Virus record (IMG/VR): IMGVR_UViG_3300044213_000107
Location: 186,001 to 250,000 of that record
Length of the DNA: 64,000 nucleotides
Direction: 5' to 3' (one strand)
The translations under genes were made by a program, and so were the position numbers. The notes under the pieces were generated by a model that worked only from the letters and a program-made list of their open reading frames with translations, had not been told where the DNA came from and ran no database searches. Positions 6,672-31,624 of this stretch are shown piece by piece. Numbering within the stretch: position 1 is the stretch's first letter; each line of letters starts with the position of its first letter.

Positions 6672-7148
6672 TTACCCCGCATACCAAATTTCGTCAAATC
6701 CTTCTTCATGGGTAGGATCTTCCCAGTTTTTAATCATGCTTGCAACAACATCACGTGGAATTTCTTTTCCAGGACGATTGTTTAATCTCGCCATCAACTC
6801 TGTCATTGGCGGTGTTTTAAACACAACCGCAATCTTGTAATAGTCCGGCAACATCGCAAACTTACGTTGACGACTTTTTACCGTGGTACTAGTTTGGTCC
6901 CAGACAATATCCCGCACTTCTTCATTGGCTAATTCAACCATTGTTGTCATTAGTTGGACTGCGTCGGGCATAAACTCTTCAAAAATTTCCGAGTATGTAG
7001 TACCACGACGTTTTGCTTCTTGTTCTACAAAAAAATCAGTGCCGACAACCGTACAGTTTTGAGTCCAATCTTGAGTAGCGATCCATGTGCTTTTTCCGCT
7101 ACCCGGAACGCCTACTAACACATAAAGTTTTGGTTGTTTTGTTTGCAT
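6672..7148 (-). CDS. P-loop kinase (polynucleotide kinase / AAA_33-like)
   Basis: LVGVPGSGKST Walker A, VWDQTS, R...R lid motif. Confidence 0.85.
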   Translation of the reverse strand: MQTKQPKLYVLVGVPGSGKSTWIATQDWTQNCTVVGTDFFVEQEAKRRGTTYSEIFEEFMPDAVQLMTTMVELANEEVRDIVWDQTSTTVKSRQRKFAMLPDYYKIAVVFKTPPMTELMARLNNRPGKEIPRDVVASMIKNWEDPTHEEGFDEIWYAG

Positions 7149-8228: not shown

Positions 8229-9374
8229 TTATTCTAAAAAATATGGGTTACTTATGCATGCTTTGACACTTTTTCCCATCTGTGTTGGGTCATTTTTCCA
8301 ATAATCTGGAAGTGTTTTCCACCATTTATCTAATCCAAATTTCCAATTTTTTAATTGAACAGTTTCTTCTTGTAATTTATTTCTAAACCATATGTCTCGA
8401 CCTCCAAAAATTATGCTAGGATATTTCTTGGCTACAATTGCTGTTGGATCCCAATCAGGATATATTAATGTATGAAGACCATCAAGACTTAACCAATACT
8501 TAGTACCATTAAATTCTCTACATGCAATATTACTTGTTTTAAGAGAACAAAATGGTAATTGAGTTATATTGCCTGACAAATAACGCTTAATCATATGTGC
8601 TTGTTTTATTATTGTTTTTGGGAAGTTTGGCGACCAATAAAATAATTCATCAGCATAAGGTTGTTTTCCGGCCATTGCAGTTGCAGTTGTTGCATTATCA
8701 ATTATATCTAAAAATTGAAAATAAAACTTGTCATTTTTATGAAATACCCTCGGCTTATCAGATCCATGCATTACACAAACTTTTTTTCCGGAGTGTATCA
8801 TGTCTGCCCATTCCGGAACAGACATTACCCAATCTCGCATTAACATACCGTTTGGGTTCCAGCACATGTTTAGTTCATAAATCCAATCGAATTTAATCGT
8901 TTTACTTGCCCAGAGATCTAGTTGCATCTGTGTAATATCAAGATATCGAAATTTAAAATTTTGTTTTTGTTGATATTTTTGAACTAATGGTATTGCAGTC
9001 TCAAATATTTCTTCGCTGTAAAGACCAAGTTTATTACCATCTCCTTCGACATTTACCTTACACACTACTTCGTCAAGTTTAATGTCGTTTTTTATAAATG
9101 TATGAAAGATATTTCCACTATCTGGTCCACCGCTCAAACTTAATATAACATAATCATAACTATCTCGTATTTGTTGGGCACGTTGCCGATATAATTCTTC
9201 TAATGATTCCGTAGGTTCTGTGGTCCAATCATAACTACTAAACACAGCTTCATTAAAGTCCCAGTGCAGATGTGTGCCAGTTTTTTGCATCATTTCAATA
9301 GCTTCAAGCTTGCTATAAAATTTTAAATCGCCGACACGATAAACACCGAGTTTATCAGGGAAATCATTTGTCAT
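8229..9374 (-). CDS. PP-loop (adenine nucleotide alpha hydrolase superfamily) protein, substrate unknown
   Basis: LSLSGGPDSG PP-loop motif. Confidence 0.6.
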   Translation of the reverse strand: MTNDFPDKLGVYRVGDLKFYSKLEAIEMMQKTGTHLHWDFNEAVFSSYDWTTEPTESLEELYRQRAQQIRDSYDYVILSLSGGPDSGNIFHTFIKNDIKLDEVVCKVNVEGDGNKLGLYSEEIFETAIPLVQKYQQKQNFKFRYLDITQMQLDLWASKTIKFDWIYELNMCWNPNGMLMRDWVMSVPEWADMIHSGKKVCVMHGSDKPRVFHKNDKFYFQFLDIIDNATTATAMAGKQPYADELFYWSPNFPKTIIKQAHMIKRYLSGNITQLPFCSLKTSNIACREFNGTKYWLSLDGLHTLIYPDWDPTAIVAKKYPSIIFGGRDIWFRNKLQEETVQLKNWKFGLDKWWKTLPDYWKNDPTQMGKSVKACISNPYFLE

Positions 9375-9742: not shown

Positions 9743-9816
9743 TGGAGCGGGTAGCGAGAATCGAACTCGCGAATAAACCTTGGCAAGGTTTCAGGTTACC
9801 ATTACATCATACCCGC
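9743..9816 (-). tRNA. tRNA-Gly(GCC), copy 1
   Basis: GCGGGTA/TACCCGC acceptor, U73, encoded CCA, loop CTTGCCAAG, TTCGATT. Confidence 0.95.
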
Positions 9817-9820
9817 ATTT

Positions 9821-10465
9821 TTATTCAAAAATGTTGTCTGGACTCATAACATGAATTTGTAATAATTCACGATATGGTATTTCTTTGTATTTCTTCCAAT
9901 TACTTGTGCAATGAACTTGCCGACCATTGAACAATACACCATCGCCGGCTACATAAGTGTAAACTCCATCAGCAGTTAGATAATCTACTAGATATTCGCC
10001 ATCATTAACACATGTATGATCTAAATCTTCAACTTCACTTAGATTACTTAACTTAGGCAATGTTTTAAAAACATCATTCCAGTTCATTACATAATCTCTA
10101 AACGCATCATTGTCTTGAAATTGTTCTTGCCATACTAGAGTTTTAAATTTAGGATTTGTATCCATGCTGATAACATATGTATAGCAAATACCTTCTTTGT
10201 CCCGGCCGTAGTCATCTATATGCAACTGATGTGCAAATGTTTGCCGTTGATACGCAGCCCATAAATTAGTTATATTTTTAAAATCCCGACGAGCAATATC
10301 TTCAATTATACGAAATTCGGGGGAGTCTTCGCGAATTTTTAATCTGTGATCCAACACTTCACCGTTAAGTTCATAGTTAACATATTTGTACCGTTCATTG
10401 TTTGTCCAGTAGGCTTTAAACTGTTCCACTTGATCCGGTGTTAGAATTTTTTCAATGTGCCTCAT
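9821..10465 (-). CDS. hypothetical protein, possible 2OG-Fe(II) oxygenase fold
   Basis: LHIDD ... QVHC ... R. Confidence 0.5.
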   Translation of the reverse strand: MRHIEKILTPDQVEQFKAYWTNNERYKYVNYELNGEVLDHRLKIREDSPEFRIIEDIARRDFKNITNLWAAYQRQTFAHQLHIDDYGRDKEGICYTYVISMDTNPKFKTLVWQEQFQDNDAFRDYVMNWNDVFKTLPKLSNLSEVEDLDHTCVNDGEYLVDYLTADGVYTYVAGDGVLFNGRQVHCTSNWKKYKEIPYRELLQIHVMSPDNIFE

Positions 10466-10683
10466 TGATTGCTTTTAACTCTTTTTAGATAATCTATACC
10501 AATTTTGCCTGCAGCAATTTCTGCAAGTGCAGTAGCAGATGGCCCACCAGCTTTGGCTACTTTTGGTTGATGTCCACGTTTAAGTTCACGTACTCTCGCG
10601 GCTGCAATTAATACTAAGTTAAATCTACCACCTACTTGTGCAGCAGCTTCGTCTGAACTATTGCGTGATGTAGTATTTACCAT
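10462..10683 (-). CDS. rpoZ: RNA polymerase omega subunit homolog
   Basis: GGRFNLVLIAAARVRELKRG...ALAEIAAGKI matches the omega core (NRFDLVLVAARRARQ...ALREI.EG). Confidence 0.88.
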   Translation of the reverse strand: MVNTTSRNSSDEAAAQVGGRFNLVLIAAARVRELKRGHQPKVAKAGGPSATALAEIAAGKIGIDYLKRVKSNQ

Positions 10684-10712
10684 GTTATCCTTTGTTTGTT
10701 GATTTTGTATTT

Positions 10713-10741
10713 ATTATACACAATGTCTATTGGATTGTCGA
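10713..10741 (-). promoter_or_regulatory. sigma70-type promoter of rpoZ
   Basis: TCGACA-N17-TATAAT, overlapping a TAAATA late motif. Confidence 0.6.
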
Positions 10742-10747
10742 TTAAAA

Positions 10748-10823
10748 TGGTGCCGCCTCTAGGTATCGAACCTAATTCTCTAGTGCTTCAAACTAGCGTG
10801 AGGACCTCCTTCACCAAAGCGGC
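10748..10823 (-). tRNA. tRNA-Phe(GAA)
   Basis: CTAGT-TTGAAGC-ACTAG anticodon arm, CCA. Confidence 0.9.
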
Positions 10824-10826
10824 ATA

Positions 10827-10901
10827 TGGTCCGGCCACCAGGAATCGAACCTGGATTACAAGATTAGAAGTCTCGGGTATTATCCATTATACGATGGCCA
10901 G
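10827..10901 (-). tRNA. tRNA-Arg(TCT)
   Basis: CGAGA-CTTCTAA-TCTTG, CCA. Confidence 0.95.
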
Positions 10902-10936
10902 CGTCTGTAAAATGGTGCGCTCGGAGGGACTTGAAC
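10898..10936. repeat. 39-bp direct repeat, copy 1 (tRNA-CAT T-loop to CCA, spacer, first 4 nt of tRNA-Arg)
   Basis: CCAGCGTCTGTAAAATGGTGCGCTCGGAGGGACTTGAAC; 37/39 identical to 12937-12975. Confidence 0.92.
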
Positions 10937-10971
10937 ATTTTTATTATTCATTATACGAACGCTAGAGATTT

Positions 10972-11409
10972 TTATAGTATAGCCGATAACCAATCAGTAT
11001 ACAATAAATTTTTATGTATTTTTATTTTCATTATCCCAGGAAAACTCATAAAGGAATGAGTCTTCCATACCTTGTTGCTTGTATCTTTGTACACAGATAT
11101 TTTAGATATGCTATTGATAAAATCTATAGTATCCACTGTTAACCTTTCCAACACAATATATAAATCTTCAGTTATATCATTGTTGGAATCAATTTTTGTG
11201 TCTGTTAGTTCCTTATTAACAAATTCTATTGAAACACTGGTTAAATCAGAATTAACAGGAATATTATAATGATGTATTTCTTCTATATCATTTTTATGTT
11301 CAATCGCATATTCGTACACACATAATTTATTGTTTATAAAAATGTTATATACAGGTTTTTTAGTAGACGTTGAATGGAGTAGCAACGATAGGGATAACTT
11401 TTTTGTCAT
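10972..11409 (-). CDS. hypothetical protein in the tRNA-inserted cassette
   Basis: 145-aa ORF overlapping the radical SAM C-terminus. Confidence 0.65.
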   Translation of the reverse strand: MTKKLSLSLLLHSTSTKKPVYNIFINNKLCVYEYAIEHKNDIEEIHHYNIPVNSDLTSVSIEFVNKELTDTKIDSNNDITEDLYIVLERLTVDTIDFINSISKISVYKDTSNKVWKTHSFMSFPGIMKIKIHKNLLYTDWLSAIL

Positions 11410-12892
11410 TTTGCTTGTGCTCTAAATATTTTTGCTCTAATCCTTCGATCTCTAATAATTTTTCATTTTGTCGGTTGATTTCAGAATAATACCCATATTC
11501 CTGCATTACTTCAACAAATCTTTTCCATCTGTTTACTCTAACATCAAATGTATTGTTTACAAATTGTGTGCTAGTCCAGAAAAAATCGCCCCACTGGTCA
11601 TGCCTATTATGTTCAAGACCGTATTCATCTGCATATCGTTGCATGAACCCGCTTCCATTTGTTAGCACCATTGGCAAAGATAAAAATACTTTTATCATAT
11701 TGTTAGTTGTTAAGTGGGCATGAGTTTTAAGTAAATCGATACTTTGTTGGAAATCATCTTCCGTTTCGGTGGGATATCCTACAAACATTAACCATACTTG
11801 TTTTATACCTTTATCAAAACAATTTTCAGCAAACCAAGTTATATCTTCATTACTGAATTTCTTCTTCATATCGTTACGAACTTTTTCACTACCCGACTCT
11901 ATGCCTACTTTAAACAATTTCGCTCCGGCAGTTGATGCTAGTTTAAAATCTGATTCAGGCATGGATATTTTAGATCGACAAATGGCATAGCCAGAATATT
12001 CTATTCTATTGGGAATTTCTTCAGTTAATACCGTATTCATTAAACGATAATTTGTGATACTCCCATTCACAAGATTGTCAGTAAACTCAAACTTATTAAT
12101 ACCATATTTAGAATGTGTTTCGATAATTTCACGTGCTATATCATTACCTTTTCTGTAGACGAATTTTGGCCAAGACGACTGCACATCGCAAAATGTACAC
12201 TCTCTGACACATCCTTTACTGCCAGTAACCGGTATAGTTAAATTTTTATTTTTGTAACTTGGATACAATGAAAAATTATATCCTTCCCATGAAGGTGCAG
12301 GTGTGTTACTAAGTGCCTCTGCAGATACAGGAGGTGCAGTGTGTATTCCTTTTTTCTTATTTTGGATGACAGAAATCAAATCATTTTCCGCATCCCCACG
12401 ATACACAGAATCTATCGGAAGATAATCCATGAAATAATTAGCATAATTAATTCCACTGATTCGTTCGTTGTTATCTAGACCTCTGCCACCTATCATTATG
12501 TAACTGTTAGGCGATATCTCTCGAACTATAGTGGATAAAGGTACAACAAAATCTAAACTTTGGCTAGAAAATACAGACAATAAAATTGTATCCGGATTAA
12601 AATTTTTTATTTGTTGTTTAACAGCTTTTCTAAGCCATTTTAAAATTTTTAAAATATTAATGCTATTTGCCGGTCTGTACCCTCTTATGGCAAACATATC
12701 TACTATTATATTCCATTGATCTGCAAATTCGCTAAACAAATCAATATTTAGGTCCCAAACTTTACTATTGTATCCATTATGTTTTAAAATGCCGTTTATA
12801 ACTGCAGGGCCGTATGGAACATCTCCGAAACTTTCTATTCCTGTATTAACAACTCTTACTGGAACTACTATTGTAAGGACATTTTTATTCAT
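11360..12892 (-). CDS. cobalamin-binding (class B-like) radical SAM protein
   Basis: N-terminal B12-binding-like domain (PYGPAVI...GG...GDAE), KGCVRECTFC, GIESGS, FVGYPTET. Confidence 0.85.
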   Translation of the reverse strand: MNKNVLTIVVPVRVVNTGIESFGDVPYGPAVINGILKHNGYNSKVWDLNIDLFSEFADQWNIIVDMFAIRGYRPANSINILKILKWLRKAVKQQIKNFNPDTILLSVFSSQSLDFVVPLSTIVREISPNSYIMIGGRGLDNNERISGINYANYFMDYLPIDSVYRGDAENDLISVIQNKKKGIHTAPPVSAEALSNTPAPSWEGYNFSLYPSYKNKNLTIPVTGSKGCVRECTFCDVQSSWPKFVYRKGNDIAREIIETHSKYGINKFEFTDNLVNGSITNYRLMNTVLTEEIPNRIEYSGYAICRSKISMPESDFKLASTAGAKLFKVGIESGSEKVRNDMKKKFSNEDITWFAENCFDKGIKQVWLMFVGYPTETEDDFQQSIDLLKTHAHLTTNNMIKVFLSLPMVLTNGSGFMQRYADEYGLEHNRHDQWGDFFWTSTQFVNNTFDVRVNRWKRFVEVMQEYGYYSEINRQNEKLLEIEGLEQKYLEHKQNDKKVIPIVATPFNVY

Positions 12893-12936
12893 AGTAATAT
12901 TTAGTAGACTAAACCAACCCAGTATACTATCTTATA

Positions 12937-12975
12937 CCAGCATCTGTAAAATGGTGCGCTTGGAGGGACTTGAAC
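12937..12975. repeat. 39-bp direct repeat, copy 2
   Basis: CCAGCATCTGTAAAATGGTGCGCTTGGAGGGACTTGAAC. Confidence 0.92.
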
Positions 12976-13028
12976 CCCCGACCAAGCGATTATGAGTCGC
13001 CTGCTCTGACCAACTGAGCTACAAGCGC
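12952..13028 (-). tRNA. tRNA-CAT (Ile2/lysidine or elongator Met)
   Basis: GGCGA-CTCATAA-TCGCT, canonical cloverleaf, CCA. Confidence 0.93.
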
Positions 13029-13034
13029 ATTAAC

Positions 13035-13120
13035 TGGTGCGACTGGCCGGAATCGAACCGGCACGGGAAAATCCCGGCAGATTTTAAGTCTGCTGCGGCT
13101 ACCGATTACGCCACAGTCGC
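13035..13120 (-). tRNA. tRNA-Leu(TAA)
   Basis: GCAGA-CTTAAAA-TCTGC, long variable arm. Confidence 0.95.
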
Positions 13121-13126
13121 TTATCC

Positions 13127-13202
13127 TGGTGCCGGAGAAAGGAGTCGAACCCTCGACCTTCGCATTACAAGTGCGCTGCTCTACCAACTGAGCTACTCCG
13201 GC
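13127..13202 (-). tRNA. tRNA-Thr(TGT)
   Basis: CGCA-CTTGTAA-TGCG. Confidence 0.95.
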
Positions 13203-13212
13203 TAAAACTTTT

Positions 13213-13305
13213 TGGCGGAGCGGGAGGGATTCGAACCCTCGATACAGTTCATCACCGTATGACACCTTAGCAGGGTGCTGACTTCAGCCGCTCATCCACC
13301 GCTCC
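13213..13305 (-). tRNA. tRNA-Ser(GCT)
   Basis: GCACC-CTGCTAA-GGTGT, long variable arm, G73. Confidence 0.95.
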
Positions 13306-13311
13306 AAATCC

Positions 13312-13387
13312 TGGTGGTCAGAAGAGCACTCGAAGCTCCACATTCATCCTTATGAGGGATGCTCTCTTCCTCTTAAGATATCTGACC
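13312..13387 (-). tRNA. tRNA-CAT (probably elongator Met), atypical D arm
   Basis: CATCC-CTCATAA-GGATG, T arm GGAGC-TTCGAGT-GCTCT, CCA. Confidence 0.85.
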
Positions 13388-13476
13388 ATATAAAAACACA
13401 CTCTTATCAATATCCCAGCGGTCGACTCGGTTTAACAGGGCCCAACGTAGAGGGTCGGGCGAATGTGTTTTTATAT
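13388..13476 (-). ncRNA. candidate structured RNA of about 89 nt filling a tRNA spacer
   Basis: 16-bp closing stem ATATAAAAACACATTC/GAGTGTGTTTTTATAT abutting tRNA ends on both sides; inner CCCGAC/GTTGGG hairpin. Confidence 0.6.
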
Positions 13477-13513
13477 GGTAGGAGCACGGGGATTTGAACC
13501 CTGAACCTATCAA
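13476..13513 (-). pseudogene. tRNA 3'-half remnant fused to the HNH stop codon
   Basis: TTGAT-AGGTT-CAGGG-TTCAAAT-CCCCG-TGCTCCT-A-CCA, with no matching 5' half found. Confidence 0.7.
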
Positions 13514-14085
13514 TGACTGAGTAGTCGTTTTGCCCTGGCGTGGCTAGCACCCTTGTCAGGCAACCCAACACTTCTCAATGCTTCTGAAATAGTATTATGT
13601 TTCTTAACAGCCTCTAATAATACTTCATCCGGAACAATTCTTTTTTTGTTATTTCTTCCTCGCCAAGTCTTAGTTTTTGAATGACAATTAGGACAAATAC
13701 ATTCTAAATTAGATCGGTCATTATTTTTTGTATCACCGTCTTTATGCTCTAATTCTAAAACAATAGGATCACCCATCCATTCTGAAATTCCACAATGGTT
13801 ACACTTATGACCTTGCTCTTCTAATACCCGTCGCTTTCTATTCTCGCTACCTAATTTTTCAAAAGGTGTGGATTGGTATTTCTCTAATGCCCAAGCTGTT
13901 GTCTTGGCACTTCGTAATCTTATTTCCTCGGTTGTAATTGGAGTTTTTCTAGTCCAACGACCGGCATTAGCAATACTTTTCTTCTTTTTGCTTTCTTCAG
14001 TAAACACTCTACTATTTGAACATTTTCTAGAACAGAATGTTCCAGGCTTAGTATGTGCTGTATTACATTTAGGACAATTTTTCAT
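13510..14085 (-). CDS. HNH homing endonuclease
   Basis: CPKC...FCSRKC zinc finger; CNHC...LELEHKDGDTKNNDRSNLECICPNCH. Confidence 0.92.
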   Translation of the reverse strand: MKNCPKCNTAHTKPGTFCSRKCSNSRVFTEESKKKKSIANAGRWTRKTPITTEEIRLRSAKTTAWALEKYQSTPFEKLGSENRKRRVLEEQGHKCNHCGISEWMGDPIVLELEHKDGDTKNNDRSNLECICPNCHSKTKTWRGRNNKKRIVPDEVLLEAVKKHNTISEALRSVGLPDKGASHARAKRLLSH

Positions 14086-14149
14086 AATATTGAACTCTTA
14101 CTTGTTATACTTTATTTATACTTAAAGTTCAATTTTATCAAAAATCAGT

Positions 14150-14223
14150 TGGTAGGCCCGGAGGGTACTGACCCCTCTTTTACGGATTAAAAGTCCGTTA
14201 CTTCACCTTAAAGTTTCAAGCCC
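14150..14223 (-). tRNA. tRNA-Lys(TTT) with non-canonical T-loop
   Basis: ACGGA-CTTTTAA-TCCGT; T arm GAGGG-GTCAGTA-CCCTC. Confidence 0.8.
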
Positions 14224-14228
14224 GTATG

Positions 14229-14304
14229 TGGTCCTTGCTCAGAGAATCGAACTCTGTTAGTCCGGGTAAGAGCCGGATACTTCGCCAGCAAAGTTTAGCA
14301 AGGA
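14229..14304 (-). tRNA. tRNA-Lys(CTT)
   Basis: TCCGG-CTCTTAC-CCGGA, CCA. Confidence 0.88.
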
Positions 14305-14311
14305 TGGTTTG

Positions 14312-14363
14312 TATTAACGAGTTCTTTAATGTCTTACAAACATATTAAAGAGTTCTTTAATGT
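14312..14363. repeat. 21-bp direct repeat, 2 copies, 1 mismatch
   Basis: TATTAA(C/A)GAGTTCTTTAATGT at 14312 and 14343. Confidence 0.85.
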
Positions 14364-14399
14364 GCCATCCCAGGACCAATACGGGGTCTTAGGATGACA

Positions 14400-14420
14400 C
14401 TACTGTTTACCTTGTTTCAT
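14400..14420 (-). other. 6-codon minigene MKQGKQ followed by a long hairpin (14362-14400)
   Basis: AAAGGAA SD, ATG AAA CAA GGT AAA CAG TAG, then GTGTCATCCTAAGACC/GGTCCTGGGATGGCAC. Confidence 0.5.
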
Positions 14421-14447
14421 GTCAAATTCCTTTGTGTTAAAAATGCT

Positions 14448-14476
14448 ATTATACAACTATCACAGCCAGTTGTCAA
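14448..14476 (-). promoter_or_regulatory. perfect sigma70 consensus promoter inside the tRNA array
   Basis: TTGACA-N17-TATAAT. Confidence 0.85.
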
Positions 14477-14484
14477 CTGTTTTT

Positions 14485-14559
14485 TGGTACCCGGTGCTGG
14501 AATTGAACCAGCGACCCTTGCGTTATCAGCACAATGCTCTACCCCTGAGCTAACCGGGT
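14485..14559 (-). tRNA. tRNA-Ile(GAT)
   Basis: TTGTG-CTGATAA-CGCAA. Confidence 0.95.
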
Positions 14560-14577
14560 ATTTTAATAAATATGTGT

Positions 14578-14757
14578 ATGATCTCTGAAGAAATTGAAAA
14601 CTCTTGGAAATACTTGTATAGATTCGTAGACGAATCCTACAAACCAAAATCATTTTGGTGTACACCCAGCGAGTTCAAACTTGAAGAACTGCCACAAATT
14701 GGTACCTCCGGAGAGACTCGAACTCCCGACTCTTTCGTTCGTAGCGAAATACTCTAA
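14578..14757 (+). CDS. small hypothetical protein antisense to the tRNA array
   Basis: TAAATA-N5-ATG; C-terminus overlaps tRNA-Arg(ACG) on the opposite strand. Confidence 0.45.
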   Translation: MISEEIENSWKYLYRFVDESYKPKSFWCTPSEFKLEELPQIGTSGETRTPDSFVRSEIL

Positions 14758-14776
14758 TCCACTGAGTTACGGAGGC
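14700..14776 (-). tRNA. tRNA-Arg(ACG)
   Basis: TTTCG-CTACGAA-CGAAA. Confidence 0.95.
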
Positions 14777-14779
14777 ATA

Positions 14780-14854
14780 TGGGGTGCGATACGAGAATCG
14801 AACTCGCGATAGCGGAATCACAACCCGCGGTTTTGCCACTAAACTAATCACACC
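14780..14854 (-). tRNA. tRNA-His(GTG) with encoded G-1
   Basis: Loop TTGTGAT, C73, extra 5' G. Confidence 0.93.
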
Positions 14855-14888
14855 ATATCAATAAATACTTGCAGGTACCAAGATAAGT

Positions 14889-15467
14889 ATGGAACACAAT
14901 TTAAATCTACAATATACACAAATACGTGATTATGTATTTGCATTATCTATACAATTTCCTTACTCCGACGAAGAAATTTTATCTGCAGCAAATACCGAGA
15001 TTCTTGAACGATGGGTTGGTCCCGGTGATAGGTACCGAACAAATTCTCCACAATCTAAAATATTAAAAGATATATTTGAAATATTTAAAGATCCTGCGAT
15101 ATTTAAACAACAAATATTAGATACGTTATACGCCACTGAAAAATACAAATATTTCTGGATTCGCAGCAAACAAGATTTGTTTACATCTTCAAGATTAAGT
15201 GTCGCACTCTACAAAGATTCTGCCAAATATTATTTAAAAAATCACCTGGATCCAAGAGACGTTATTGTATCAGGAATGTATTATCTCACAAAGTCAGATT
15301 TACAATATACAACAATCTACACTTCGGAAAATAATGATAATCCAATACAACTACTACCCAGTCAATACCAAGGTTGGATGTTAGCCAACACTGAAAATAG
15401 TTGGCACGATGGCAGAAATGAAGATTCTGTTGATAGGATTGCCATTTATTATGATTTGTATCTATAA
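14889..15467 (+). CDS. putative 2OG-Fe(II) oxygenase-fold protein
   Basis: NHLD...SGMYYL...SWHDG...DR, same layout as 2857-3495. Confidence 0.55.
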   Translation: MEHNLNLQYTQIRDYVFALSIQFPYSDEEILSAANTEILERWVGPGDRYRTNSPQSKILKDIFEIFKDPAIFKQQILDTLYATEKYKYFWIRSKQDLFTSSRLSVALYKDSAKYYLKNHLDPRDVIVSGMYYLTKSDLQYTTIYTSENNDNPIQLLPSQYQGWMLANTENSWHDGRNEDSVDRIAIYYDLYL

Positions 15468-15469
15468 CT

Positions 15470-15543
15470 TGGCGACCCATGAAGGAATCGAACCTCCGTC
15501 CTTAGTTTTGGAGACTAGTACACTACCATTGTGCTAATGGGCC
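15470..15543 (-). tRNA. tRNA-Trp(CCA)
   Basis: Loop CTCCAAA, G73. Confidence 0.93.
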
Positions 15544-15547
15544 AAAT

Positions 15548-15633
15548 TGGTGGAAGTCCAGGGACTCGAACCCCGTATGCCGTAAGACGTCGGATTTACA
15601 GTCCGATGCAGTAACCTGTTCTGCTCGACTTCC
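15548..15633 (-). tRNA. tRNA-Tyr(GTA)
   Basis: TCGGA-CTGTAAA-TCCGA, long variable arm. Confidence 0.95.
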
Positions 15634-15639
15634 TTTATG

Positions 15640-15724
15640 TGGTGCGGATGGTGAGACTCGAACTCACACACCTTACGGTAATGGCTTCTAAGACCATCTC
15701 GGCTACCAGTTACGACACATCCGC
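15640..15724 (-). tRNA. tRNA-Leu(TAG)
   Basis: ATGGT-CTTAGAA-GCCAT, long variable arm. Confidence 0.93.
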
Positions 15725-15731
15725 AAAAACT

Positions 15732-15805
15732 TGGAGCGGGATAGGAGAATCGAACTCCTAACTAAACCTTGGCAAGGTTTCGTTTGACCATTAAACTAAT
15801 CCCGC
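15732..15805 (-). tRNA. tRNA-Gly(GCC), copy 2
   Basis: Same anticodon arm as 9743-9816, different D and T arms. Confidence 0.95.
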
Positions 15806-15818
15806 AACTCCGAAAACA

Positions 15819-15894
15819 TGGCTGTCTAGGCAGGGATCGAACCTACGACAGGGTGATTAACAGTCACCTGCTCTACCAACTGAGCTACTAGACA
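15819..15894 (-). tRNA. tRNA-Asn(GTT)
   Basis: GGTGA-CTGTTAA-TCACC. Confidence 0.95.
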
Positions 15895-15906
15895 ATATTT
15901 ATACTC

Positions 15907-15980
15907 TGGTGCCTCGTGACAGAATCGAACTGCCGTCTGCACCGTGTAAGGATGCGGCCCTACCATTAGACGAACGAGGC
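15907..15980 (-). tRNA. tRNA-Val(TAC)
   Basis: GCATC-CTTACAC-GGTGC. Confidence 0.93.
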
Positions 15981-16052
15981 GAAATTTGGCGCCGATTTTT
16001 GTCATTTTAACTGAGGCTAACGAGCACTCCCTCAGATTAGTTGCAACTTATT

Positions 16053-16126
16053 TGGTGGAGAAGGAGAGAATCGAACTCTCAATTGAAGCTTGCAAAGCTA
16101 CCGTTATCCCATTTAACTACATCCCC
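16053..16126 (-). tRNA. tRNA-Ala(TGC)
   Basis: G3-U70 pair, loop TTTGCAA. Confidence 0.95.
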
Positions 16127-16130
16127 AAAA

Positions 16131-16280
16131 TTATTCTTTAGTTTGTTCTTTGTGTTCTAGTAGTTTTTGTTGATATTGATCTTCAGTTAAACCATGCCAA
16201 CCACAACACTTACCGTCTGGGCTACGGCCACAACCGCATTTACCAATGTCTTCTGCATTTTCTTGTACTCTCATTTGCAT
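16131..16280 (-). CDS. 49-aa CDGSH-like iron-sulfur/zinc-finger miniprotein (not in the ORF track)
   Basis: MQMRVQENAEDIGKCGCGRSPDGKCCGWHGLTEDQYQQ...; CxCxxS...CxGxH; AAGGA SD. Confidence 0.7.
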   Translation of the reverse strand: MQMRVQENAEDIGKCGCGRSPDGKCCGWHGLTEDQYQQKLLEHKEQTKE

Positions 16281-16300
16281 GCATTTCCTTTATTAAAAAA

Positions 16301-16377
16301 TGGTCCGTGTGACACGATTCGAACATGCGACCACCTGGTCCCAAACCAGGAGCTCTACCAGGCTGAGCTACACACGG
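16301..16377 (-). tRNA. tRNA-Pro(TGG)
   Basis: CCTGG-TTTGGGA-CCAGG. Confidence 0.95.
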
Positions 16378-16382
16378 AAAAC

Positions 16383-16457
16383 TGGATGCGGGAGACGGAA
16401 TTGCACCGCCGATCTTCAGGTTATGAGCCTGATGAGTTACTACTTCTCCATCCCGCG
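16383..16457 (-). tRNA. tRNA-fMet(CAT)
   Basis: C1:A72 mismatch, TCAGG-CTCATAA-CCTGA, T-loop TGCAATT. Confidence 0.88.
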
Positions 16458-16465
16458 ATAAACAA

Positions 16466-16539
16466 TGGTAAGGGAACTAGGAATCGAACCTAGAATAGCA
16501 GAATCAAAATCTGTTGTGATACCATTTCACTATTCCCCA
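16466..16539 (-). tRNA. tRNA-Gln(TTG)
   Basis: Loop TTTTGAT, unpaired 1:72. Confidence 0.92.
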
Positions 16540-16545
16540 ACGATG

Positions 16546-16621
16546 TGGTACTCGGTAGGGAATTCGAATCCCTGTTCACGCCGTGAAAGGGCGTTGTCCT
16601 AGGCCTCTAGACGAACCGAGC
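16546..16621 (-). tRNA. tRNA-Glu(TTC)
   Basis: ACGCC-CTTTCAC-GGCGT. Confidence 0.95.
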
Positions 16622-16630
16622 ATACTTGTT

Positions 16631-16709
16631 TGGCGACTTGTAGGGGATTTGAACCCCTGATCTCTACCGTGACAGGGTAGCGCATTAAGCCAGACTATGC
16701 TAACAAGCC
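16631..16709 (-). tRNA. tRNA-Asp(GTC)
   Basis: CTACC-CTGTCAC-GGTAG, G73. Confidence 0.95.
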
Positions 16710-16714
16710 AAATT

Positions 16715-16952
16715 CTCTATATGTAAACATACCTAAGGAACTCTTGAACAATATGGACTCTGCCGGCACCACGGGTTCGTCTCCCGATTGGGTTCATTCG
16801 TTATTACAGCCTACATGATCTGTCAGTACACTCGTACAGTATCTTGCGATCCGTAACTACCTTCATGTGCACTGCATACTCCGCCCCGGCGAGCTGTCCC
16901 CTTTGCAAGCACCTAACAGTATAGGTAACCTTTTGTACGTTTACATATAGAG
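16715..16952 (-). ncRNA. candidate structured RNA (238 nt) heading the tRNA transcript
   Basis: 18-bp closing stem CTCTATATGTAAACGTAC/GTATGTTTACATATAGAG; inner GCCGG/CCGGC, GGAC/GTCC, ACATGA/TCATGT, CGGG/CCCG helices. Confidence 0.65.
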
Positions 16953-16985
16953 GCTATTGTTTACAATAGCTTATATGTGATTAAC

Positions 16986-17156
16986 TTTTTAAAGAACACA
17001 GTTAATTGCTTAACAAGCATGTATTGTAACACCTTTTTGGACAATTAGCAAGTGTTTTTTACTGCTGTTGCTGATTTGCTACAACGTTTGTTCGATAACA
17101 AACTAGTTAATTTCTTAACTTGTATCTATTATAGCACCAAATAATAACCCGCACAA
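16986..17156 (-). promoter_or_regulatory. tandem sigma70 promoters, each followed by a GNRA hairpin, then a boxA-like site
   Basis: P1 TTGTGC-N17-TATAAT (17156-17128), GTTAA-GAAA-TTAAC (17106-17119); P2 TTGCTA-N17-TACAAT (17051-17023), GTTAA-GCAA-TTAAC (17001-17014); GTTCTTTAAAAA (16986-16997). Confidence 0.7.
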
Positions 17157-17189
17157 TCTTCGGGTTTTGGGTGTTGTTTTTTAATAACA

Positions 17190-17212
17190 TGGAGTAGGTG
17201 ACAGGACTTGAA
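17190..17212 (-). pseudogene. 3' remnant (T-loop to CCA) of an ancestral tRNA, probably Cys
   Basis: TTCAAGT-CCTGT-CACCTAC-T-CCA, U73. Confidence 0.8.
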
Positions 17213-17247
17213 ATATATATTATTTCGTTTTGAACATAAATAATAAC

Positions 17248-18033
17248 ATGAACACCTGTCAACAATGTACTTCATTATTTGCTCAAACTCCTGGAACGTA
17301 CGGTAAATTTTGCTCTGTATCCTGTAGTAGTAAGTTTAATAATAAAATTAGACGCCAACAGACTACGGAAAACTATTTATTAAATCCAAAAGTTTGTAAA
17401 AATTGCAATTCAATCATAAATTATTCTCAAAGAAAAAGTAATATTTTTTGTAGCCGATCCTGCGCCGCTGTGTTTAATAATGCCAAAAAAGATTGGACTA
17501 ATATTAAAACTGGGCCGACACCTAAACAAAAGGCACCGAAATTAAAAAGAAAAGCGAGAACTAATACTATCCCAGATGCAGACGGACCATACACTATTAT
17601 ATACCTATGCACTTGCAAATTTACTGGAAAAAAATGGTACTCCCCAACAGTTAAGACCATACACCCATCAACAATATCAACTAAAAAATTGTATTCTTAT
17701 CAATGTAGATTTAACTTTGGTATTAAGTCGTACCCTGAATGGTTTGCTTATGCATCAAATTTAATAAACACTAACGGCTGGTACTCAGCCTCTAATAGAG
17801 GTAATAATTTATCTGGATGTTCTCGTGATCATTTGTATTCAGTATCGGATGGATACAAAAACAATATAGATCCTAAAATAATATCTCATCCTGCAAACTG
17901 TGAGATAATTCCGCACAGGAAAAATCAGAGTAAAAACAAGACTTCGTCGATTACATTAGAAGAACTAAAAGAAAGAATCAAAAAATTTAATCAAAAATAT
18001 TTGGAGATGCCAGATGGGGTCGAGCCATCCTAG
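17248..18033 (+). CDS. HNH-family endonuclease with two Cys-rich zinc-finger repeats
   Basis: CQQC...FCSVSC and CKNC...FCSRSC; SRDHLYSV...HPANCEIIPHRKNQSK; start taken at ATG 17248 (TAAATA-N5-ATG) rather than TTG 17230. Confidence 0.8.
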   Translation: MNTCQQCTSLFAQTPGTYGKFCSVSCSSKFNNKIRRQQTTENYLLNPKVCKNCNSIINYSQRKSNIFCSRSCAAVFNNAKKDWTNIKTGPTPKQKAPKLKRKARTNTIPDADGPYTIIYLCTCKFTGKKWYSPTVKTIHPSTISTKKLYSYQCRFNFGIKSYPEWFAYASNLINTNGWYSASNRGNNLSGCSRDHLYSVSDGYKNNIDPKIISHPANCEIIPHRKNQSKNKTSSITLEELKERIKKFNQKYLEMPDGVEPS

Positions 18034-18075
18034 AAAGTTTTGCAGGCTTCCACCTAACCGCTCGGACATGGCATC
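18002..18075 (-). tRNA. tRNA-Cys(GCA) with non-canonical T-loop
   Basis: GATGCCA/TGGCATC, U73, loop CTGCAAA, T arm GATGG-CTCGACC-CCATC; overlaps the HNH C-terminus antisense. Confidence 0.85.
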
Positions 18076-18101
18076 GTAATATAAAAATTTTAGTGTGGTA
18101 G

Positions 18102-18117
18102 TTCGGCGCACACCTAC
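18102..18117 (-). pseudogene. 5' remnant of the ancestral tRNA
   Basis: GTAGGTG-TG-CGCCGAA; GTAGGTG is the exact partner of CACCTAC at 17194-17200. Confidence 0.65.
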
Positions 18118-18125
18118 ATAATAAA

Positions 18126-18218
18126 TGGTGGAAGCGGTGAGACTCGAACTCACACACCCTGTTGAGAGCCCTCAGTTTTCAAGACTGCTGCCGCTATGCC
18201 GATTCGGCTAACGCTTCC
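18126..18218 (-). tRNA. tRNA-Ser(TGA)
   Basis: Loop CTTGAAA, long variable arm. Confidence 0.93.
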
Positions 18219-30529: not shown

Positions 30530-31624
30530 TTAAAATCCTGCGAGCATAACAAATGGCATTGGATCTATGAAATCTTCTAGGTCATTACGTACACTTTCGT
30601 CTAATTCGGCATCAAAAGTCTGCAATAATTGTATCATACGAACACACAATAACATACTCATAACTAAATCGTCAGTTTCGCCTATTTTTGCAGCAAAGCT
30701 AGTGCCGTGTGCTACAAAGTTTTTAAGTTCACTAATTAAATTATTACTTGCAATGTGCAGACGTTTGTTTTCAATTAATGCTTTTAACTTAGCACAAACT
30801 GATATCTTGGATTTATTTGAAGTGGTAAATCCTTTGCGATACACCCTTGATACACCCGCACGCTTAGGTTCACTTAAAAAGGTACCACGAATATTTTCTT
30901 CGCCCATTTCCGCAATGGTAACCAATGCTGCTTCCCCTAATGTATTATTTTCTACGCTGTAATAGATGTTATTTTCTGTGCCAATTATATCGTATATGTA
31001 TTGGCAAACTTCTTTCATTATACCTACTTGTTTTTGGATAGGAGTTTTATTGTGTTGCCATTCGGCTACCTGTTTCATTGATGGCAATTCAACCACTTGT
31101 AGTGCTGCGTAATCGCCACCGGTGCCCAGGCTAGGATCCAGGCCGACTGCATAAGTATATCCTTTTTCAGGTTTTTTATACCAGCGAACTTGCCCTTGTT
31201 TTTCAATTGGATCTATACCGGCCAGTTCTACTAGATGCAAAGGGTTAATAAGCGTCTCATCAAAAATAATGAATTCGCAATTTGATGACAGCACTCCGTT
31301 TGTGTAATATCTATGACCACCTTCAACCTCTACTAAGTCATATACTAACTGTGTTTTGCCCGTGTCCGTGACCCCAATGATCTTAATTTCTCCGTTCTTG
31401 GATAATACTATGTCCCCAACAGTAAGTTCGTTCAACGGAACTCTAGTAGTATCATCAATAAACAACTTATGGTTGTTGGTGCACTCTAACCAATAGTCCT
31501 GCTCAAACTCAACTCTGCATATTGGGCGAGTTCCCAGGCAACGTATTCCTACAAATGATTTATATCCATCAGGAGTCAAAACTTTATACCCGTGTATATT
31601 TTCTTTAAAAGTTACTTCTGCCAT
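30530..31624 (-). CDS. gp17: terminase large subunit C-terminal nuclease part, fused to a 115-aa C-intein (31280-31624)
   Basis: MAEVTF...CTNNHKL...VYDL.V...HRYYTNGVLSSN | CEFIIFDETLI; GLDPS.G.GGD, SVENN, DDLVMS. Confidence 0.92.
   Translation of the reverse strand: MAEVTFKENIHGYKVLTPDGYKSFVGIRCLGTRPICRVEFEQDYWLECTNNHKLFIDDTTRVPLNELTVGDIVLSKNGEIKIIGVTDTGKTQLVYDLVEVEGGHRYYTNGVLSSNCEFIIFDETLINPLHLVELAGIDPIEKQGQVRWYKKPEKGYTYAVGLDPSLGTGGDYAALQVVELPSMKQVAEWQHNKTPIQKQVGIMKEVCQYIYDIIGTENNIYYSVENNTLGEAALVTIAEMGEENIRGTFLSEPKRAGVSRVYRKGFTTSNKSKISVCAKLKALIENKRLHIASNNLISELKNFVAHGTSFAAKIGETDDLVMSMLLCVRMIQLLQTFDAELDESVRNDLEDFIDPMPFVMLAGF

Follow-up and report, generated by a model that had tools for sequence, protein, structure and literature searches.

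How a phage transcribes a long array of largely untranslated tRNA genes, and whether it does so with a leader built like that of a bacterial rrn operon, is the question raised by a short intergenic region of an uncultured freshwater phage. The stretch analysed here (the window) comprises 64,000 nucleotides, bases 186001-250000 of the 260,723-bp IMG/VR virus contig IMGVR_UViG_3300044213_000107, which has 38.5% G+C and an estimated completeness of 74%. The window encodes a T4-type tail-sheath stabiliser, a tail sheath and a terminase, so the phage is a jumbo myovirus, and near-identical DNA is found in freshwater metagenomes. All of its tRNA genes, 25 by ARAGORN plus two extra Rfam hits, lie in one minus-strand array, and none was found elsewhere in the contig. 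A sequence-only reading of the region had proposed that the main tRNA transcript starts with an rrn-like leader consisting of tandem promoters, twin GNRA hairpins and boxA.

To verify this proposal, we first read all elements on the minus strand. The features identified are listed in Table 1.

Table 1. Features of the leader, the tRNA array and neighbouring elements (window coordinates).
Coordinates	Strand	Feature	Details
17146-17166	-	Terminator-like hairpin	AACCCG, 9-nt loop, CGGGTT; loop and 3' arm overlap the P1 -35; inferred to insulate the operon from upstream transcription; followed by a T-rich run on the plus strand
17128-17156	-	Promoter P1	-35 TTGTGC (17156-17151; 3 of 6), 17-nt spacer, extended -10 TGcTATAAT (hexamer 17133-17128); predicted start near 17121; relatives have an upstream promoter with its own hairpin 84-105 bp before the boxA promoter
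17106-17119	-	P1 5' hairpin	GTTAA-GAAA-TTAAC, 8 nt after the -10; 5-bp stem (6 bp with flanking A-U); partial hit of model R1, 17.7 bits
17086-17103	-	Second hairpin of the P1 leader	7-bp stem, AUCG loop; -9 kcal/mol together with the P1 5' hairpin, z -3.3
17023-17051	-	Promoter P2	-35 TTGCTA (17051-17046), 17-nt spacer, extended -10 TGtTACAAT (17028-17023); A-tract just upstream of the -35; predicted start 17014-17018
17001-17014	-	P2 5' hairpin (boxB-like)	GTTAA-GCAA-TTAAC, 8 nt after the -10; followed by TGT
16986-16997	-	boxA	GTTCTTTAAAAA; first 11 nt, GTTCTTTAAAA, at 16997-16987
16984-17017	-	Full hit of model R1 (hairpin plus boxA)	47.9 bits, E 2e-8
16943-16978	-	Local hairpin after boxA	ACATATA, inner 7-bp stem with UAAA loop, TATATGT; -12.8 kcal/mol, z -4.9
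16935-16952	-	Leader strand of the leader-trailer helix	18 bp, one G-U pair; duplex -26.1 kcal/mol against -8.0 for shuffles
16731-16935	-	Conserved ~190-nt structured RNA	Enclosed by the helix
16715-16732	-	Trailer strand of the leader-trailer helix	5 nt before tRNA-Asp
9743-16709	-	tRNA array served by P1/P2	24 ARAGORN tRNAs from Asp at 16709 to Gly at 9743; interspersed ORFs, including an HNH endonuclease and one opposite-strand ORF
9743-18218	-	Whole tRNA array	25 ARAGORN tRNAs
14153-14223	-	Rfam tRNA hit not called by ARAGORN	44 bits
18005-18075	-	Rfam tRNA hit not called by ARAGORN	37.6 bits; overlaps the 3' end of the ORF 17248-18033
14889-15467	+	ORF	
17248-18033	+	Cysteine-rich ORF diverging from P1	phrog_23051 (unknown function); weak HNH-endonuclease hit at the N-terminus; separates two upstream tRNAs from the main array
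30530-31624	-	Terminase RNaseH-like domain	Weak intein-splicing hit at residues 30-74

The -10 hexamers of the two promoters are exactly 105 bp apart. A consensus promoter scan flagged P2 and missed P1 only because the P1 -35 is weak. The palindrome GTTAA-N4-TTAAC (GTTAANNNNTTAAC) occurs twice in the window against 0.25 expected, and these are the only two copies in the contig. Thus, every structural element of the sequence-only reading was confirmed, with two corrections. It had placed the boxA-like run after each hairpin, but the run follows only the second one, whereas the hairpin of P1 is followed by another hairpin. It had also described the loops as covarying, but the two loops do not covary, as both are simply GNRA.

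Next, we examined whether the run is a boxA. The consensus GYTCTTTAANA was derived by Baniulyte et al. (2017) from functional E. coli boxA elements, with a critical C at position 4, and the element of the window matches it perfectly, including this C. It should be noted that a bare boxA 11-mer is not rare, since 8 copies occur in the genome against 2.9 ± 1.3 in shuffles, although seven of the eight lie on the plus strand and the P2 boxA is the only copy on the minus strand. The bare E. coli boxA 13-mer with up to 2 mismatches, found 11 times in the genome, is too common to mean anything alone. The weight of the observation therefore comes from the combination of elements and from their conservation.

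To study this conservation, IMG/VR was scanned for the hairpin with a GNRA loop followed within 4 nt by boxA. The pattern was found in 96 viral stretches but in only 1 of 185,579 prokaryote species genomes, where it lies on a 7.5-kb, likely phage contig in a Crocinitomicaceae MAG. This MAG did not point to a host, as it shows no boxA enrichment (35 matches against 70 for the control), and consensus TTGACA/TATAAT promoters would generally argue against a Bacteroidota host. The 70 distinct viral copies (71 by a slightly different deduplication) were not selected for a promoter, yet nearly all carry one. Of the 71, 68 have TATAAT or TACAAT, 57 have the -10 placed 8 nt before the hairpin, 46 have TTGACA at 17-nt spacing and 47 have TG, with an A-tract just upstream of the -35. 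The family consensus is TTGACA-17-TGnTAYAAT.

In a scan for TATAAT followed by the palindrome with a free loop, the loop was GNRA in 20 of about 109 cases, where about 3 are expected, and most of those cases also had a consensus -35. For a test without a hairpin requirement, we anchored a scan only on promoter and boxA and left the middle free. This gave 116 distinct cassettes, of which 70 carry a hairpin of at least 5 bp with a 4-nt loop, against 5% of shuffled segments. Among the 80 with a stem of at least 4 bp, 68 loops are GNRA, and 27 different stems occur with compensatory changes such as ACTAA/TTAGT, GTTGA/TCAAC and GCTGA/TCAGC. In a 62-sequence alignment, 4 of 5 pairs show double changes in 39 cells, and the covariation score is 0.447 against 0.231 in shuffles, with 0 of 500 shuffles as high, while slid controls collapse. 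That alignment was selected for having a hairpin, which biases the percentage paired but not the compensatory changes. About a tenth of the cassettes have boxA directly after the start, with no hairpin. This pattern shows an RNA stem-loop and excludes a DNA operator.

The cassette is tied to tRNA genes. Of 156 distinct promoter-boxA cassettes, 129 (83%) have same-strand tRNAs within 3 kb, with a median of six, 53 have one within 30 nt, and none has an opposite-strand tRNA. A few cassettes precede protein genes. In loci L343, L350, L353, L370 and L378 (L numbers denote individual cassette-bearing loci of other contigs), a promoter, a different hairpin (GCCAT...ATGGC) and boxA are followed about 25 nt later by a ribosome-binding site and ATG, which is reminiscent of suhB-type regulation.

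A covariance model of hairpin plus boxA (R1) found one full copy in the genome, the hairpin of P1 as a partial hit, and nothing else. Dozens of other consensus sigma70-like promoter matches in the genome (TTGAC-17-TATAAT, then ATACACAT) show no such leader. In several of them, for example at positions 176016, 104436, 95221 and 75439 on the minus strand of the contig, the -35 is followed by GGGTTTT, as if it sat in a terminator hairpin. P1 of the window and the relative L262 show this design as well, and these sites may be compact terminator-promoter junctions. Five other large contigs carrying the cassette (235-383 kb, two rated 100% complete) each hold exactly one copy. Three of the five encode a tail-sheath stabiliser 46-60% identical to that of the window, while the other two, both incomplete, had no match. 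The cassette is therefore nearly invariant across deep protein divergence. The tandem layout is not peculiar to the window either, since at least five relatives (L242, L255, L384, L348 and L393) have an upstream promoter with its own GNRA hairpin and no boxA 84-102 bp before the boxA promoter.

The layout was then compared with the rrnB leader of E. coli K-12. In rrnB, P1 and P2 are about 119 bp apart, boxB starts about 11 nt after the P2 -10, and boxA (GCTCTTTAACA) follows 2-3 nt after boxB. It is followed by ATTTATC, and many phage cassettes continue in the same way. The best hit of R1 in this 561-bp region is exactly P2-boxB-boxA (12 bits, E 0.02), so the phage leader is collinear with it. 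In the literature, boxA is described as critical for the rrn complex while boxB is dispensable. Unlike the longer E. coli boxB, the phage hairpin is a minimal 5-bp GNRA stem-loop at the predicted extreme 5' end, and P1 also has one. No boxC-like GU-rich run follows boxA, although boxC is poorly defined outside enterobacteria and this carries little weight.

Instead, boxA is followed by a local hairpin that is conserved in at least 17 relatives with a covarying inner stem. Its 3' strand is shared with the leader-trailer helix, so the two folds compete. The helix encloses a G+C-rich segment containing a structured RNA of unknown function. A 12-sequence alignment of this RNA folds into a multi-helix structure with a long-range helix (CCUAYA/CYGUU with GRCRG/UGUAGG) and conserved single-stranded runs. 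A second covariance model (R2) finds 16 copies in 100 cassette loci, ten of them not in the seed, and 25 of 31 pairs show double changes, although that alignment was fitted to the model. Rfam 15 has no family for it. Searches at gathering and E-value thresholds gave tRNAs only, and a weak IMES-3 hit was rejected because it reached 21.9 bits against a gathering threshold of 55 bits, with many non-canonical pairs. Leader-trailer helices flank 20 of 22 copies of the RNA, at -13 to -30 kcal/mol against about -6 for shuffles, and their sequences differ. This mirrors the helices that enclose 16S and 23S rRNA. In relatives L237, L246, L262 and L243, the same kind of helix encloses other cargos (a short segment, a tRNA-like fragment, or two units in a row), which looks like a general way of packaging and excising small RNAs in these arrays.

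Taken together, these results support the interpretation that the region is the promoter-leader of the single stable-RNA operon of the phage, built like a bacterial rrn leader. We consider this reading probable, but antitermination itself is inferred, as no start-site, binding or read-through data exist and the host is unknown. According to this model, host sigma70 RNA polymerase starts at P1 and P2, each transcript begins within about two nucleotides with a short GNRA-capped stem-loop, and all transcripts then carry a consensus boxA. Nascent boxA would be bound by host NusB-S10 (NusE), which, with NusA, NusG and SuhB, would convert the polymerase into an rrn-type antitermination complex. That complex would resist Rho, pause less and stay tethered to the 5' leader while it crosses about 7 kb of largely untranslated tRNA genes and spacers. 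Protection from Rho is a plausible need, since the array contains long stretches that ribosomes do not cover, for example about 600 nt antisense to the first of the plus-strand ORFs in Table 1. The tether would also help the leader strand find the trailer strand, as in rRNA operons, and prepare the helix for processing, probably by RNase III. The hairpin is a separable module, either a boxB-like part of a nut-like site, or a 5' cap that shields the boxA leader from 5'-end-dependent RNases, or both. As the hairpin of P1 has no adjacent boxA and some cassettes lack a hairpin, it need not be part of a Nus site, and the P2 hairpin alone is thermodynamically marginal, since the minimum-energy fold prefers another structure (z +0.8). 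It should also be kept in mind that in suhB a boxA promotes Rho termination rather than preventing it. Of 24 sequencing runs holding parts of the stretch, all freshwater or aquatic, the RNA runs were assembled contigs with under 7% of the sampled words and covered only tRNA-like pieces. The exception is one low-depth contig over 16966-17039 from a metatranscriptome library (run X22), which covers the P2 -10, hairpin and boxA of a close relative, with a TT insertion behind 16999. This contig includes promoter DNA, so it may be DNA carry-over or read-through from P1, and nothing can be said from these runs about start sites.

Among the alternatives, the one that survives best, though it is unlikely as the whole explanation, is that the hairpins are only 5'-terminal stabilisers and the boxA-like run is an incidental A/U-rich spacer. 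A stem-loop at the very 5' end hinders pyrophosphate removal and 5'-end-dependent RNase E entry and scanning, and RNase E scans from the 5' end and is blocked by obstacles (PMC9943677). The hairpin starts about 2 nt from the predicted start at both promoters, P1 has a hairpin without boxA here and in relatives, and the same hairpin follows consensus promoters before ordinary protein genes in other contigs, with no boxA. In this genome, however, it occurs only at the two promoters of the stable-RNA operon. This explanation does not account for an invariant 12-nt run that equals the boxA consensus, varies only where boxA may vary, and sits 2-4 nt after stems of many different sequences, nor for cassettes with boxA and no hairpin. 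It is compatible with the rrn-type reading as a second role for the hairpin.

An N-style nut site, the other option of the sequence-only reading, is somewhat less likely. In this case, a phage-encoded arginine-rich protein would bind the GNRA hairpin and, with boxA-bound Nus factors, give lambda-like antitermination. The 5-bp stem with a GNRA fold resembles lambda boxB in size and lies, as in lambdoid nut sites, next to a phage-borne boxA close to an early promoter. The loop class is conserved while stems vary, the weak hairpin might need a protein to hold it, and N binds boxB and NusB binds boxA in nut sites. Nevertheless, the hairpin precedes boxA with a 2-4 nt gap in the window and in all cassettes listed that have a hairpin, as in rrn and unlike nut, and the loop is a true tetraloop rather than a pentaloop. 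The boxA is full consensus, while lambda nut boxA appears to be shortened and N-dependent, and the cassette serves tRNA genes rather than delayed-early protein genes. No candidate N-like protein was identified, although only a NusB gene was looked for, and not found, in a contig that is 74% complete.

DNA operators for a dimeric repressor are very unlikely. The perfect inverted repeat is placed over the predicted start site of both promoters and occurs nowhere else in the genome, but across the family the arms change while complementarity is kept and the centre is strand-specifically GNRA, which is the signature of an RNA stem-loop. An intrinsic terminator or attenuator was rejected because the hairpins are AU-rich 5-bp stems with no adjacent U-run. 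Chance resemblance in AT-rich DNA, suggested by the short hairpins, the common boxA 11-mers and a promoter scan that found 41 sites against 32.5 expected in 10 kb, is refuted by the single full R1 hit in 260 kb and by more than 150 conserved copies elsewhere.

boxA-dependent antitermination is already known from rRNA operons, lambdoid nut sites and a few host genes. What we rate as new here is the context, the minimal 5' hairpin and the phage-specific module. The boxA elements outside rRNA, such as that in the suhB 5' UTR (Baniulyte et al. 2017), share the consensus in a 5' leader but repress translation and promote Rho termination of a protein gene, whereas here the target is an untranslated RNA operon and boxA is coupled to a 5' hairpin. 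The tRNA region of phage T5 is the same kind of locus, a long one-strand tRNA array with interspersed homing endonucleases and unexplained stable RNAs, but T5, T4, KVP40, RaK2 and GAP32 show no promoter-boxA arrangement above control level. BLAST of the region against cultured phages, near and distant, gave only tRNA-Asp matches, and BLAST of a consensus cassette gave only chance-level hits. A radical-SAM neighbour used as a synteny anchor gave only 25%-identical distant loci. In the literature searched, nothing relevant was found on boxA together with phage tRNA genes or arrays.

A conserved cassette of this kind would show that virulent phages also recruit the rrn machinery for their own stable RNAs, and it would explain how long untranslated tRNA arrays escape Rho. 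It would also give a compact natural leader (about 35 nt) for testing what a boxB-like hairpin contributes, while the covariance model provides a marker for the start of phage stable-RNA operons in metagenomes. With their leader-trailer helices and new structured RNA family, these operons are a small, tractable model of co-transcriptional RNA folding and processing. More tentatively, it is possible that a group of uncultured phages, of which the checked members are freshwater jumbo myoviruses, carries a miniature rrn operon with tandem promoters, a new minimal boxB-like GNRA hairpin, consensus boxA and leader-trailer helices. It would co-opt the ribosomal-RNA antitermination and chaperone complex of the host to make phage tRNAs and the previously uncatalogued ~190-nt RNA, possibly drawing Nus factors away from host rRNA synthesis.

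The tRNA arrays of relatives also contain tRNA-Sec-like Rfam hits, at 6978-7062 (-) in L255 (47 bits) and at 9222-9309 (+) in L024 (36.9 bits). Finally, the weak intein-splicing hit within the terminase of the window suggests that this gene may be a split or intein-bearing terminase.
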